Source: Mantamonas sphyraenae STR306
Taxonomy: Eukaryota > Protista > CRuMs
Direction: 5' to 3'
Assembly (NCBI GenBank): GCA_026936335.1
Contig: JAPMXV010000005.1
Span: 248,001 to 312,000 of the forward strand
Length of the DNA: 64,000 nucleotides
The notes under the pieces: model-generated
What the model saw: the letters and a program-made list of their open reading frames with translations, nothing else
The model's database searches: none
Told to the model about the DNA's origin: nothing
Position numbers and translations under genes: made by a program
Shown: positions 58,812 through 64,000 of the stretch, in pieces
Position numbering within the stretch: the first letter of the stretch is position 1
How the letters are laid out: the number at the start of each line of letters is the position of its first letter

Positions 58812-61391
58812 TCAACGACGACGCGCCACCTTGGCCTTCTTCACGCTCTTGGCTCGCGCAGTGGGGCACACGCACAGTTGGTTCAGCGTCGTCGCCTTGC
58901 GAGACACCTTGTTGCACTGCGTACGGCCCTTGCGGCAGAAGCTGTCCTCGATCTTCAGATTGCGCGAGCAGAAGCACTGCTGGCACACCTTTTGCTTCTT
59001 CTTGTTCTTCAGCGTCTTGGTGCTGCAGTGCTTCACACGCTCGCCCTGGTCAGCCAGGCACTTGCAGTGCTTGCGCTGGCCCTTCTTCCCGTTCTTCTTC
59101 CACGAGCACTTGCACAGCGGCGTCGTGCGCTTCACACGCGCCTCCATCTGTGCCTGCAGTGCCTGCAGACCGCTTTCGTACACTTCCATCACCTGTGCAC
59201 GCTCCATCAGCCGCCTCACAGTCTTCTCGTCCACCTTGCCTCCCTTTTCGTGGGCCGCATACGCCTCCGTCAGCTCCTTCACCAAACCCACAACCTGCAC
59301 GCGCGTCTGCACCACAACTCCCTTCACCTCAGCCAGATTGTTGTCCGGTCGCAGCTTGCCCAGCACAAACTTGGCCTTTGTCCACTCCTCCGCCAGCTTC
59401 TTCTTGTCCACAGCCCCGTTCTTCTTCTCCAGCTCAGGAACACGCACGCCCTCCGCCGCCTTCTTGCGTGCGTCAATCATGTCGCGAAGACGCTGCAGCG
59501 TCCCCTCGCCCATCTTTGTCACCTTGGCCAGCTGTGCGTCCAGCGCCTCCGGCTTGAACAGCTTGCGCAGCTTGCTGCCCTTCAGCAGCTTGCCAAGGCG
59601 TCCAATCAGCTCGCGGAACTTGCTCTCAGCGCCACTCACCATCTTCTCCAGCTCGCCCGCCTCGCTCTCGTCCGCCGTCTGGATCATCTTCACCAGTTCG
59701 TCCACGCGTGCACGGCTAAACAGGCCGTACACTTCCTGCTGGATTGCCTCTGCCTCCTGGTACTCCTTCGAGTTCACTGCGTTCAGAAGCTTGTTCTTTT
59801 GCGCGGTTTCAAACGCGTGGCGCGCCTCGGCGTCCTCAAACAGCTTGGCAAGCTGCTTGAAGAACGTCTCGCCTCGCTTCTGCGTGTTGTCAACCAACGT
59901 CTTCACCTGCGCCTCCGTCATCACTCGCTTCATCTCGGGGATGTTCAGCAGGTCTCGCATCTCGTCCAGGTGTGCCAGGAAAAACTCGTACGACCCGTCA
60001 AACGACTCCTTCAGCAGCGCCTTGTCGAACGAGCCGTTCTCCCCGTACGCCTGCTGCAGTGTCTCCATCACAGCCTTGCCCTCAAACAGCGTGCGCATGT
60101 CCGCCATAATCTGCTTCACACGATCCATCGTCGACTTGATCACCGCCGCCGTCTCTGCGTCTTCCTGTGCGCGCACGCGTGCTGCCTCCTCCATCTGCGC
60201 CTCCTGCTCCGGGTTGAACATGTCCTCCTCGCGGCCTGTCTTGCCGCGCACCACGTTCACAATGTCCGTCACCTGGCCAATTGTCTCGCGCACCGAACCC
60301 ACCAGATTCTTCACGTTCGTCCACACCTCCTTGCCTCGCTTGAACAGCGTGCTCACCTTGCCCAAGAACGACTTGCCCGTCAGGCCACCGCTAAACAGAC
60401 GCTTCACCGAGCTCACCACACCCTTGCCCTGCGACAAGATGCTCTTCACCGCGCCCAGCGCTCCCGATGGATTCTTCAGCATGTTCTGCACGCCAGCCAG
60501 CAGCTTGCCGCCCACCGACGCAAACTTGCCTCCAAACAGGCGCTTTCCGTACGCCACCACGCGGTTGGCCGTGTTCATCACCGTGTGCAACAGGCTCTTC
60601 TTGCCAAACTTGCCCAGCACACCCAGGATGGGGCCCTTGACATAGCGCGACACCACCGTGCTCAGCTTGCCCTTCAGGCCCTTGAATGCAACAAGATCGC
60701 GCGCAAAGCTGCCAAACTTGCTCTTGACCGACGTCAGCAGCGTCTTCGGGGCGCCCACAACCTTTTGCCACGAGTACTTGAAGCCCTTGATCTGGCCGAC
60801 CGTGGACTCAAACACGTCGCGGTACTTAAGGAAGGTCTTGCCCAGCTTGGTGCGCATAAACATCTTGCCCAGCTGGCCCTTGATCACGCCGGCCAGCTTG
60901 TTCTTGTCCTTCAGCGTCGACAGAATGCCCTTCAGCGACAGGCGCTCCGTGCCCAGCACGCGCGTCACCTTGTCAAAGATGGAACCAAACGTGTTGGCCA
61001 CCTTGCGGAAGGGCTTGAACTTCATCAGGCGTGCCTTGACCTTGTCCACCAGCTTGTTCTTCAGCTCCTCAAACTTGCCCTTCAGGATGCCCTGGATGGG
61101 TCCTGGGATCTTGCCAAACAGAGCCTGGCCCTTGGCAATGAGCTTGCCCACAGAGCCGCTCAACAGCTTCTGTGCAAACGGAGTCTGCCCCAGCGTGCTC
61201 TTGAACACACTGAAGATCTTCCCCTGCGCAAGGTCGCGCGTCACGTTGATAGCCTTGGTGGCAAAGTTGGCCACCTTGCCCAGCATGCCGCCCAGACGAG
61301 TCACCTTGAGGCCACCGCTCAGTACGTTGAAGCCCTTGGTGACGCCTGCTGCCAGCTTGCCGATGAGCGAGCCGCCCATTTTGCTAGCCAT
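58812..61391 (-). CDS. Lys/Gly/Phe-rich amphipathic + helical + Cys-rich protein; probably the frameshifted continuation of the upstream secreted gene
   Basis: 859-codon ORF from ATG 61391, overlapping the upstream TAG; composition continues that of the upstream ORF; 12-Cys C-terminal domain. Confidence 0.7.
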   Translation of the reverse strand: MASKMGGSLIGKLAAGVTKGFNVLSGGLKVTRLGGMLGKVANFATKAINVTRDLAQGKIFSVFKSTLGQTPFAQKLLSGSVGKLIAKGQALFGKIPGPIQGILKGKFEELKNKLVDKVKARLMKFKPFRKVANTFGSIFDKVTRVLGTERLSLKGILSTLKDKNKLAGVIKGQLGKMFMRTKLGKTFLKYRDVFESTVGQIKGFKYSWQKVVGAPKTLLTSVKSKFGSFARDLVAFKGLKGKLSTVVSRYVKGPILGVLGKFGKKSLLHTVMNTANRVVAYGKRLFGGKFASVGGKLLAGVQNMLKNPSGALGAVKSILSQGKGVVSSVKRLFSGGLTGKSFLGKVSTLFKRGKEVWTNVKNLVGSVRETIGQVTDIVNVVRGKTGREEDMFNPEQEAQMEEAARVRAQEDAETAAVIKSTMDRVKQIMADMRTLFEGKAVMETLQQAYGENGSFDKALLKESFDGSYEFFLAHLDEMRDLLNIPEMKRVMTEAQVKTLVDNTQKRGETFFKQLAKLFEDAEARHAFETAQKNKLLNAVNSKEYQEAEAIQQEVYGLFSRARVDELVKMIQTADESEAGELEKMVSGAESKFRELIGRLGKLLKGSKLRKLFKPEALDAQLAKVTKMGEGTLQRLRDMIDARKKAAEGVRVPELEKKNGAVDKKKLAEEWTKAKFVLGKLRPDNNLAEVKGVVVQTRVQVVGLVKELTEAYAAHEKGGKVDEKTVRRLMERAQVMEVYESGLQALQAQMEARVKRTTPLCKCSWKKNGKKGQRKHCKCLADQGERVKHCSTKTLKNKKKQKVCQQCFCSRNLKIEDSFCRKGRTQCNKVSRKATTLNQLCVCPTARAKSVKKAKVARRR

Positions 61392-62460
61392 GGCCAGACG
61401 CGCGGGTGATGAGGTTCGAGCCCAGGCCTCCCAGCGAGCTGAACATGCCGCTGATACCGCCCAGCGCCGTGCCAATGCCCGGCACAAACGAAAGGATCAT
61501 GGAGCCGATCTTGAACCACTTGCTCTGCATGATCTTCACCGCCCAAGGCGCCACCTTGTTCAGGAAGCCTGCCACCTTGGCGCCGATCTTGGCCACAAAG
61601 CCGCCGACCTTCTTGACAGCCTTCTTGACAAACTTGCCAAACTTGCGGGCGACGCGCTTTACCGTGCGCACTGCCTTGCTGACGAAGCGGCCCACGCTGC
61701 GCACGGCCTTCTTCACGACGCGGCCCACGCGACGCACAACACGGCGGACCGCGCGGGCGATGGGGCGTGCGACACCTGTGGCATTAAGCAGGACGAGCGA
61801 AACGGGCAGAGTGAGCGGCGACGAAGTGGCAACACAGGCCAAATTCCCACGCGGCTCACAAAAAACTCGCGGCGGGATACGCTGGCAGAAAACGTACGAC
61901 GGACGACACGCACGACACGCCGCACAATGCGGCGCACGGGTCGAGCAACCTTGCGGACAACACCTGCAGGGGGAAAAGCAAAGCAATGCAAGGCACCGGC
62001 GTTTGGGGGGGGGAAGCGCGTGTGAGCGGGGCGGGCAGATGGAAAAAAAAAGGGGATGGGGCCACAGGGCCAACGTACGGACGACACGGCGGACAACGCG
62101 ACGTGCAACGCGGGTGACACGGCGGAACCAGCCACGACGACGACGACGACCCCAGTAATCACTGTTGTCATCCATGTCGTACACGTCCGGGTCCTGGAAG
62201 AGCGCATCTTGCACCTCCTCGTCGGCCGAGTACACGTCGCCCTCGTCTTCGTCGTCGTCTCCAGAATCGTCGGATTGCACGGGCAGGTGACGTGCGTACT
62301 CATCGGTACTGTCGAAAGCGTCACTTTCACCCACGTCAGAGCGATCCATGTCTTGGTCAGACACGTCGGACGACGCACTTGCAGACGCACTCGAGCTGTC
62401 GGCCAGAGCGGCAGAAGCCACGAGCAGAAGCATCAGCACAGTCACAAAGTATTTGCTCAT
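61384..62460 (-). CDS. Secreted prepro-protein: signal peptide, acidic prodomain, RRRRR site, cationic amphipathic helix (exons 62460-62079, 61963-61898, 61775-61384)
   Basis: MSKYFVTVLMLLLVASAALA; D/E-rich segment; WGRRRRRGWFRRV...; two GTACGT...CAG introns join the Arg/Val repeats in frame. Confidence 0.8.
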   Translation of the reverse strand: MSKYFVTVLMLLLVASAALADSSSASASASSDVSDQDMDRSDVGESDAFDSTDEYARHLPVQSDDSGDDDEDEGDVYSADEEVQDALFQDPDVYDMDDNSDYWGRRRRRGWFRRVTRVARRVVRRVVRTLALWPHPLFFSICPPRSHALPPPKRRCLALLCFSPCRCCPQGCSTRAPHCAACRACRPSYVFCQRIPPRVFCEPRGNLACVATSSPLTLPVSLVLLNATGVARPIARAVRRVVRRVGRVVKKAVRSVGRFVSKAVRTVKRVARKFGKFVKKAVKKVGGFVAKIGAKVAGFLNKVAPWAVKIMQSKWFKIGSMILSFVPGIGTALGGISGMFSSLGGLGSNLITRASGHG

Positions 62461-62662: not shown

Positions 62663-64000
62663 TCAGGTTTCATTGAGGATGACAAGCGCAGCGACGATGC
62701 TGGTACTGCCCAGGATCTTGAGGCCGACATTGAAGGGGTCCCTGAGTTCGACACGCTCGGAAGCAGTGGTGTTGAGAAAGGTAGGCCAGCCAAAGTTGAG
62801 GGCGAGGGAAGTGAGCCAAGCGAGGACAACGCGGCTCAGGGTGAGCTCGAGGTAGACGACGTTGAGGTCGTAGCTGATGGCCAGGTAGAAGTAGGCCATG
62901 GCGCGTGCATTGAGCATGAATCTGTACATGACGAGATTAAACAGGTTGGCCTCCCGGTAGGTGGCCTTGACGGCTTGGACAAAGGTCTCGTCCAGTTCGG
63001 TGTCGCCGGCGTAGTATCGCTTGAGCCACGGCAGATAGTCAAGGAGGAGAAGAAAGGGCCAGAGGAAGAGGGGAAGGAGCACCTGATCGAGCGAGGTGTA
63101 CCCAAACACGTTGACACGGTACGTGGTGTTGTACAGCACCTGAGACACAAACCAGGTGCTGTACGTCCATAGAATAAGGCTAAACGGAAGCAGGATGCGG
63201 AAGGAGCGTGGCCAAACAATTTGCGCAGTGCAGCGACGATATGAGCAGAGCGGGAAGTTGGGACCTGCGACGTGGGCATGGTGTCACGGAGTGGGCGATA
63301 GGTGGACGAGGACGTGGCGTCGTCCAGTGGCTCTGCAGACTCGTGATCGTCAGAGAGATCCAGCTTCTGATAGCTGGTGGAGGGTACACGTCGCTCGATG
63401 ACACACAGGAAAGCACCGAGGAGGCCGAGAGCAAACACGCCGGCGCCGACGGGTTTCTGGGGCGGAAGATCGAACAGTTCAAACGTTGGGTTGATGAGAA
63501 AGGAGGAGGTGAGGGAAGCCATGACGAGCAAGACCAGGCCGAGAGGTTCGCTGTTGAAAGTGTTTTGACGGCAAGTGTGAGGAAGGACAGAATGGGTACA
63601 GCCGCGGCGTGAACGTGGAAAACACACCGCGCTCGTGAACCGGGGAAGCGGGGGAAAGAGTGCTACGGGGACAACGTACTTGTATAGAACAACCTCGCAG
63701 ACGTAGTAGAGGATGGCAATGGCGCCGTTGATGAGAAGGACGGGATGTTGGGCAATCTTGGAGAACATGGAAAAAGGGCCTTGCGGAGGACACTGAACTG
63801 GGGTGCAAGAGTGCTTTGAACAGTAGTCGGGCGTGTGTCCATCGTAGTCAACCTCTTGATAGCATTGCTGTTGCTCGTTGTGTGCATAGATGGCAGAGGT
63901 GATCGTAGGAAAGCCGAGTTGGAGAATGGCAAAGATGACAAAGACCATGATGGATGAAACGGTAGAGAGAGCAATCAACATATGTCGCTTGGATCTCCTG
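62663..64000 (-). CDS. Multipass membrane protein of unknown family (possibly 5'-partial; apparent frameshift near 63220)
   Basis: Hydrophobic segments in two frames that join if one base is added at cgcaaattg (giving ALRKIVWPRSFRILLPF). Confidence 0.55.

Follow-up and report, generated by a model that had tools for sequence, protein, structure and literature searches.

What kind of protein is encoded by a gene that places an almost pure Arg/Val helix behind a putative signal peptide, an acidic segment and a run of Arg residues? The gene starts at position 62460, on the minus strand, of the window analyzed here, a 64,000-nucleotide (nt) stretch of the genome of Mantamonas sphyraenae STR306 (GenBank assembly GCA_026936335.1, contig JAPMXV010000005.1, positions 248,001 to 312,000 of the forward strand). 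Mantamonads, members of the CRuMs group, are free-living flagellates that glide in marine habitats and are voracious feeders on bacteria (PMC10492846). Our preferred answer, to which we give about an even chance of being correct, is that the product is a secreted, convertase-activated effector that binds or permeabilizes membranes and is used on bacterial prey. In transit the acidic piece would mask the first part of the cationic helix. A furin/kexin-type convertase would cleave after the Arg run, and the mature chain would begin at GWF. The exposed helix would bind anionic bacterial membranes, a hydrophobic zipper helix would insert, and the bacterivore would thereby permeabilize or digest its prey, extracellularly or within the food vacuole. 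That the chain is cleaved, that it acts on membranes and where in the cell it resides are all predictions from sequence. The origin of the gene from a phagotrophic bacterivore supports the assignment to prey, and the multicopy divergent family, the fusion of its module to a lipase and the bactericidal activity of Arg/Val 24-mers fit a membrane effector.

Translation of the window DNA gives three exons on the minus strand (62460–62079, 61963–61898 and 61775–61384). The signal peptide and the acidic piece are encoded in exon 1, together with WGRRRRRGWFRRV and the first residues of the Arg/Val run. Exon 2 consists of 21 codons and two split Arg codons and is nearly pure Arg/Val, and the composition of exon 3 shifts gradually from Arg (Arg/Val) toward Lys-rich. 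An earlier note made from the letters of this DNA had described a signal peptide, an acidic segment, WGRRRRR and an Arg/Val run that appears after removal of two GT-AG introns, and all of these were reproduced. The splice junctions are predicted. The spliced reading of the paralogue on contig C51 agrees at GFFRRVGRAFR with P0002, an mRNA of Mantamonas plastica, which supports GT-AG introns within the cationic helix in this family. Duplication as the origin of the two introns was considered and found to be unsupported, the introns not being copies of each other.

The signal peptide, judged by inspection, has a basic n-region, a 13-residue hydrophobic core and A-L-A ahead of D-S. A similar N-terminus is found in the paralogues on contigs C52 and C32 and in P0002. 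The following acidic pro-piece is rich in Asp, Glu and Ser, exon 1 carrying 24 Asp and 6 Glu. The junction between the Arg run and Gly is the sole site in the first 278 amino acids (aa) that passes the furin rule as coded here. Arg pairs and runs inside the helix always have Val or Ile next, and an aliphatic P1' residue is described as unsuitable for furin in the part of PMC5129557 that cites Nakayama 1997. As the Arg runs of the helix lead into such residues, RRRRR|G alone passes. The same scan found no second furin-type site in the 169 aa past the Arg run; two more occur in ORF2, the reading frame that follows the exons (see below), at the borders of its Lys/Gly domain and of its Cys-rich tail. 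A furin/kexin-type convertase with S8 and P domains is encoded by an open reading frame (ORF) on contig C45 (E 2.5e-88 to furin, 2.9e-85 to kexin). It ends in an SH3 domain, which is uncommon at the C-terminus of such enzymes. A cut behind the Arg run is thus plausible, the motif being conserved and compatible with the furin rule and the genome encoding a convertase.

The cationic amphipathic helix is coherent and continuous over about 125–150 aa with an 11-residue period, and its first third is nearly pure Arg/Val. Within one 62-aa stretch about 74% of the residues are Arg or Val, and Thr, Ala, Pro, Ile, Lys and Gly are scattered among them. Exons 2 and 3 contain neither Asp nor Glu, so that the polar face is purely cationic. 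The helical analysis suggested by the earlier note yielded strong amphipathic order: the hydrophobic moment equals 0.74 over 84 aa of exon 3 (0.20 ± 0.06 in shuffled sequences) and 1.09 for exon 2, values reached by none of 5000 shuffles in either case, and it is maximal at 95–100 degrees. The autocorrelation of Lys and Arg peaks at 4, 7, 11, 18 and 22. Tandem Repeats Finder reports short repeats only, including a 33-nt tandem period at 61665–61737 that matches the 11-residue period. A 66-nt unit is also present, and Pro occupies the unit borders of the 11/22-residue repeats. Arg and Val codons vary synonymously along the helix, which argues for selection at the protein level rather than for a simple DNA repeat.

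These properties bear on the reading of the gene as an Arg-rich nucleic-acid-binding, ribosomal or protamine-like protein, or as simple-sequence DNA taken for protein. The very high Arg content and the GC-rich CGN and GTN codons speak in its favor, but against it stand the signal peptide and acidic pro-piece of the product, a strict helical periodicity in place of clustered Arg, the variation among synonymous codons, the presence of short tandem repeats only, and the Lys that the M. plastica homologue has at positions where the M. sphyraenae gene has Arg. We consider this reading barely credible. The substitution of Lys for Arg also suggests that the Arg/Val richness partly reflects the 59% GC genome. 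Searches and folds were run on separate pieces, with the exons apart and the two sides of the frame break described below apart. Homology to a known structural or nucleic-acid-binding protein, the finding that the earlier note had named as fatal to its proposal, appeared in none of the Pfam, fold and homologue searches.

Exon 3 as read ends at a TAG (61386–61384) that overlaps the ATG (61391) of ORF2, an 859-aa ORF in another frame. The three exons look like the first part of one gene with a one-base frame break, which would encode a protein of roughly 1,140 aa. In the paralogues on contigs C51 and C32, parts similar to exon 3 and to ORF2 lie in one uninterrupted frame, and the transcript P0002 is colinear across the break (E 4e-9 and 9e-11 on its two sides). 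Reading through the equivalent point in these sequences indicates one gene and not two. The homology changes frame within 61392–61410, an interval too short for an intron, which points to a break of one base, either an assembly error or a true lesion. A 16-nt GT..AG mini-intron over the stop would restore the frame; it was rejected, as the family introns have 112–122 nt and the paralogue alignment fits worse. A longer intron was rejected because conserved residues on both sides lie within 20 nt. The reading frame very probably continues beyond 61384 to 58812. Of the extent 61540–62460 proposed by the earlier note, the three exons stand, whereas its end falls inside exon 3.

Past the break, the Lys/Gly domain carries the family block G-F-K-Y-S-W-Q-K-V-V-G-A-P in the other frame at 39–45% identity, with 45% identity to C51 over 389 aa. 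The middle domain of ORF2 (about 370 aa of helical bundles) was modelled by AlphaFold with a predicted local distance difference test score (pLDDT) of 71.6, and a Foldseek search of its model against the PDB returned nothing below E 0.2. The homologues from M. plastica likewise end in Gly/Cys CxC motifs.

If the gene instead ended at the TAG, its 278-aa product could be a classic antimicrobial peptide (AMP) precursor that frees an Arg/Val lytic helix. The stop codon is there, so is the layout of signal peptide, anionic piece, poly-Arg and amphipathic helix, and Arg/Val-only 24-mers, including the LBU2 class, are bactericidal and membrane-disrupting (PMC7357155). We nevertheless find this improbable: the frame stays open past the corresponding position in the homologues and the M. 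plastica transcript, the 278 aa offer no second furin-type site at which a short peptide could be freed, and the 169 aa that follow the Arg run close with a hydrophobic helix truncated within a conserved block. The small peptide precursor of the earlier note therefore does not hold, with no second release site for at least 169–170 aa and a mature chain that continues for 300–500 aa in homologues and for about 1,030 aa in this copy.

The break also admits the reading that this copy, whatever the family does, is a pseudogene at a decaying locus. The frame change occurs in a polished assembly, and the family is multicopy with one of the C32 copies itself fragmented. Both pieces of the present gene are, however, open and well conserved (the identity to C51 given above), and the assembly was built from long reads of a diploid. 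Moreover, the next gene shows a second frame change 1.8 kb from the first, which suggests a local assembly error. On balance true decay has a low probability. The source assembly was produced from PacBio long reads with FALCON and polished, and the organism is diploid (PMC10492846).

A profile hidden Markov model (HMM) of the helix/hinge/zipper core found seven loci in the M. sphyraenae genome, with E 2.4e-33 for the present one. The hinge and zipper follow a family signature, N/Q-S-[KP]-x-F-K-I then L-S-F-x-P-G-x-G-T-A-x-G, which the gene contains. The consensus of the junction consists of acidic residues, D-[FYL]-W-(G), 4–7 Arg, G-[FW]-F and two basic residues. It recurs in at least seven genes, on contigs C5, C42, C51, C52 and C57 (twice) and weakly on C24, and in P0002. 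In some relatives acidic and basic segments alternate. Two Trinity transcripts of M. plastica in EukProt, P0001 and P0002, show that the family is expressed in that species. The codon pattern for WGRRRR is not commoner genome-wide than a control, and 4 of its 21 matches stand in family context.

Outside the genus little was recovered. Pfam gave only sub-threshold noise for all gene pieces and paralogues. A homologue search of 5.8 billion clustered proteins with ORF2 residues 1–400, ORF2 residues 388–859 and P0002 returned only the query itself, and Protein Atlas gave leads below 0.9 only. A profile search of 1.84 billion representatives recovered, besides the two transcripts of M. plastica, only P0003 and P0004, two weakly matching proteins from metagenomes. 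In the databases searched, members with the full architecture are found only in Mantamonas.

Several relatives carry the module in other settings. In a class-3 lipase on contig C57 the insert comprises an acidic run, DFW, six Arg, GGFF and a Lys/Val/Ala amphipathic helix; it follows the part that aligns with fungal lipases and immediately precedes D-L-V-T-R-I-P, the motif of the catalytic Asp. A polyprotein-like gene on the same contig (C57a) has one poly-Arg/helix/hinge/hydrophobic unit followed by two near-identical units; its repeat unit is composed of an acidic spacer, F-G-R7 or a degenerate site, and GFF with a Gly/Arg-rich amphipathic segment. In the 1,034-aa ORF on contig C10, WGRRRR is followed by about 290 aa of Ala/Arg (AAARAR-type) helix, Pro/Arg/Thr/Lys repeats and helical-bundle repeats, the last matching ORF2 residues 334–663 at 35% identity. 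The giant ORF on contig C24 has about 140 aa of cationic 11-mer helix with a weak Phasin_2 match (22.6 bits); a spacer rich in Lys comes next, and the beta-rich C-terminal region extends past the retrieved locus. A further secreted-looking protein on contig C16 (about 215,387–216,205; L056:1117-1935, plus strand) has an acidic N-terminal region, no cationic helix and a PLA2-like Y-C-G-x-G / H-D-x-C-Y core with a sub-threshold Pfam match. It was the only PLA2-like hit, and no fusion of the module to an sPLA2 was located.

Proteins resembling the core were found on bacterial and phage contigs. P0003 and P0004, of which one lies on a bacterial contig, start with Met-GFF or Met-GFL, in register with the Mantamonas core, and score 37–40 bits against the family HMM, while 2000 shuffles gave at most 13 bits. 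Like the Mantamonas proteins, these two and the IMG/VR and JGI contigs L057–L062, L064 and L065 have GFF/GFL followed by basic residues, a cationic helix, F-K-I-A-S..L-S-F-[IV]-P-G and a Gly zipper, and their core aligns almost without gaps at 35–41% identity. In contrast to the Mantamonas gene, they have neither a signal peptide nor poly-Arg: the bacterial ones begin at Met, and the phage core comes after an acidic region and an L-x-E motif (a protease-type site). A start at Met-GFF, or a position behind a protease-type site, fits a mature N-terminus at G[FW]F in Mantamonas. P0003 (L053:157-795; ENA ERZ23495063 scaffold_22455) is a 212-aa protein starting with MGFFSKIGK, with 35–41% identity to the family core; its contig looks bacterial (UbiA, PdxA and CcmB neighbors), and it weakly matches a region of a PHROG endolysin family (E 2e-4). 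The phage contigs L057 (JGI Ga0129333_10002280), L061, L062, L064 and L065 (IMG/VR) have about 40% GC and encode a head maturation protease (phrog_207) followed by a head scaffolding protein of roughly 1,200 aa (phrog_237). The N-terminal extension of the latter contains acidic regions, L-x-E motifs, a GFFKKIGK helix and an LSF[VI]PGVGTA zipper. The phage scores are weak (16 bits) and the loci were retrieved with the motif itself, and we treat the phage matches as a lead only. Scans of GTDB genome contigs revealed no relative, and isolated phages (INPHARED) gave no match.

Among known systems, the earlier note had singled out the designed peptides LBU2 and WLBU2. According to PMC7357155, LBU2 is 24 residues long and contains no residues other than Arg and Val. 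The sequence of WLBU2, confirmed in published papers, shares the 10-mer VRRVVRVVRR with exon 2 plus the split Arg; the literature searched did not yield the exact sequence of LBU2. LBU2, WLBU2 (PLG0206) and the gene have in common an idealized amphipathic helix made almost wholly of Arg and Val. The designed 24-mers, however, have no precursor, whereas in Mantamonas the Arg/Val stretch leads into a Lys-rich helix that is part of a large protein. A 10-mer in common is to be expected of two helically spaced sequences written in only two letters, and this argues for convergence and not ancestry. The resemblance is therefore compositional convergence on an idealized helix, and LBU/WLBU2 is a design class rather than a homology family.

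Precursors of the dermaseptin/magainin, cecropin and melittin types release peptides of 12–50 aa. These linear cationic AMP precursors of animals share with the Mantamonas gene a signal peptide, an anionic pro-piece, a basic processing site (putative in Mantamonas) and a cationic amphipathic helix, so that the precursor layout seen by the earlier note stands in its elements. The gene has no second release site, however, and its mature chain measures from 170 to about 1,030 aa, far from a short mature peptide. Pfam, homologue and profile searches showed no sequence relationship to these precursors. In fungi, the secreted protein Ece1 is cut by a kexin-type convertase, which frees the membrane-damaging helix candidalysin. 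A kexin/furin homologue in the genome and the three tandem units of C57a recall this system, but the site here consists of 4–7 Arg flanked by aromatic residues and not of a Lys-Arg pair. A helix full of Arg pairs would be shredded by a plain dibasic protease, and furin-like extended specificity would thus be needed.

Exchangeable apolipoproteins, perilipins and synuclein bind lipids by helices with 11/22-residue repeats, and the 33-nt/11-residue period, the 66-nt unit and Pro at the unit borders liken the gene to them. In agreement with this, the 11-residue-repeat helix could have a non-lytic role as a lipid- or surface-binding scaffold, a granule coat or condenser acting by acid-base pairing, a lipid-particle binder, or a cationic adhesive for gliding or prey capture. 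The 11/22-residue periodicity with Pro punctuation, recalling exchangeable apolipoproteins and perilipins, favors such a role, as do the weak Phasin_2 match of the C24 relative, the very large protein with helical bundles and a Cys-rich tail, and the alternation of acidic and basic segments in some relatives. On the other hand, the Mantamonas protein differs from those helices in its all-cationic polar face, signal peptide, pro-piece and zipper helix; the zwitterionic polar face of class A lipid-binding helices was not encountered, and Pfam gave no match to apolipoprotein, perilipin or synuclein families. The conserved Gly-zipper helix and the lipase fusion point to membrane attack, and neither Pfam nor the fold search matched a scaffold family. 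A non-lytic role appears rather unlikely to us.

Several observations count against the effector reading that we prefer. The acidic piece has a charge of −28, the helix +49 up to the hinge, and +61 more follow after the hinge; an array of about +110 cannot be neutralized as a whole by this piece, which covers part of it only, and a complete self-neutralization, as the earlier note suggests it, is not supported. The furin rule derives from animal enzymes, and the C32 paralogues have no Arg run. AlphaFold gave a pLDDT of 40 and no confident fold for the conserved core. Proteins that bind lipid surfaces without lysing membranes typically show an 11/22-residue periodicity too. The helix resembles such 11-mer binders, and a helix of more than 100 aa on a protein of more than 1,000 aa is unlike known lytic peptides. 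The unspliced gene and a form that skips exon 2 both also keep the frame. Finally, if the break is real, this copy encodes either a 278-aa product or is a dying gene.

The coordinates of the features of the gene and of related loci are listed below.

Table. Features of the gene (positions in the window) and of related loci in the M. sphyraenae genome (positions in the retrieved locus and in its contig)
Feature	Position	Strand	Basis or remarks
Start codon and signal peptide, aa 1–20	62401..62460	−	ATG at 62460; judged by inspection
Acidic pro-piece	62155..62400	−	About 82–84 aa, net charge −28
Junction WGRRRRRGWF	62125..62154	−	Putative furin/kexin-type site after Arg run; proposed mature N-terminus GWF
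Exon 1	62079..62460	−	382 nt; translation
Intron 1 (predicted)	61964..62078	−	115 nt, GTACGT..CAG, phase 1; frame and motif continuity only
Exon 2	61898..61963	−	66 nt; one 22-residue Arg/Val amphipathic unit
Intron 2 (predicted)	61776..61897	−	122 nt, GTACGT..CAG, phase 1
Exon 3 as read	61384..61775	−	Eight 11-residue amphipathic turns, hinge, hydrophobic helix, TAG 61386–61384
Hinge Q-S-K-W-F-K-I and Gly-rich hydrophobic helix with GxxxGxxxG zipper	61420..61527	−	Family alignments; most conserved block
Frame break	61392..61410	−	Paralogue homology moves from exon-3 frame to ORF2 frame
Lys/Gly-rich amphipathic domain, ORF2 aa 1–387, net +61	60231..61391	−	C51 45%, C32 39% identity; ends at furin-type site
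Near-neutral helical-bundle repeats, ORF2 aa 388–755	59127..60230	−	Repeats common to contig C10 gene; ends at R-V-K-R site
Basic Cys-rich tail, CxC pairs, 12 Cys, ORF2 aa 756–859, net +28, stop	58812..59126	−	Composition
Convertase ORF	L054:94-2391 = C45 about 304,314-306,611	+	S8 and P domain, C-terminal SH3 domain
Class-3 lipase with module	L015:1249-2502 = C57 about 136,500-137,750	−	Roughly 75-aa insert
Polyprotein-like gene (C57a)	L005:490-1764 = C57 about 306,700-308,000	−	Three tandem units: acidic spacer, poly-Arg, GFF
1,034-aa ORF	L052:2472-5576 = C10 about 103,970-107,075	−	WGRRRR
Giant ORF	L014:46-3264 = C24 about 106,667-109,885	+	Very acidic stretch, then TWGRARRW

The assembly comprises 25,061,354 bases in 78 contigs with about 59% GC; the published figures for the FALCON assembly are 25.06 Mb, 78 contigs and 59.19% GC (PMC10492846). 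In the window (1–64000) nearly all large ORFs are on the minus strand and uninterrupted; the window is intron-poor, as is the genome, which is also gene-dense. A kinetoplastid origin, considered for the paucity of introns and the placing of the genes on a single strand, was rejected in view of the clear GT-AG introns and the agreement with the published M. sphyraenae assembly. Among the ORFs of the window are a PTP-like phytase/adenylate kinase fusion, ALDH, GGT, an ABC transporter and a 2,371-aa NB-ARC/TPR protein. The adjoining gene at 62663–63981 on the minus strand encodes a multi-pass membrane protein and shifts frame at about 63150–63290, which a frameshift would explain, or else an intron whose donor is atypical and whose acceptor is TCTCAG at about 63141.

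Small heterotrophic flagellates are the main grazers of bacteria, and to our knowledge almost nothing has been established about the molecular means by which they kill or open their prey. Most protist effectors known so far are saposin-like pore formers from amoebae. A broader picture, which we find possible but doubtful, is that a deep-branching CRuMs bacterivore carries an arsenal of self-masked, convertase-activated amphipathic/Gly-zipper effectors absent from family and structure databases. Their module would also sit on a lipase and other secreted proteins, membrane-active proteins of bacteria and phages that start at the same GFF would have their core in common and may have been its source, and the Arg/Val array would be a natural counterpart of LBU. 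The look-alikes in phage head proteins and on a bacterial contig raise the question of where the module originated. The natural Arg/Val, Arg/Gly and Lys/Val variants of the helix may be useful for peptide research. With its clear activation logic (signal peptide, acidic mask, conserved poly-Arg junction and a convertase gene) and no database annotation, the family is a concrete candidate for the killing or opening of prey in a lineage near the base of Amorphea.

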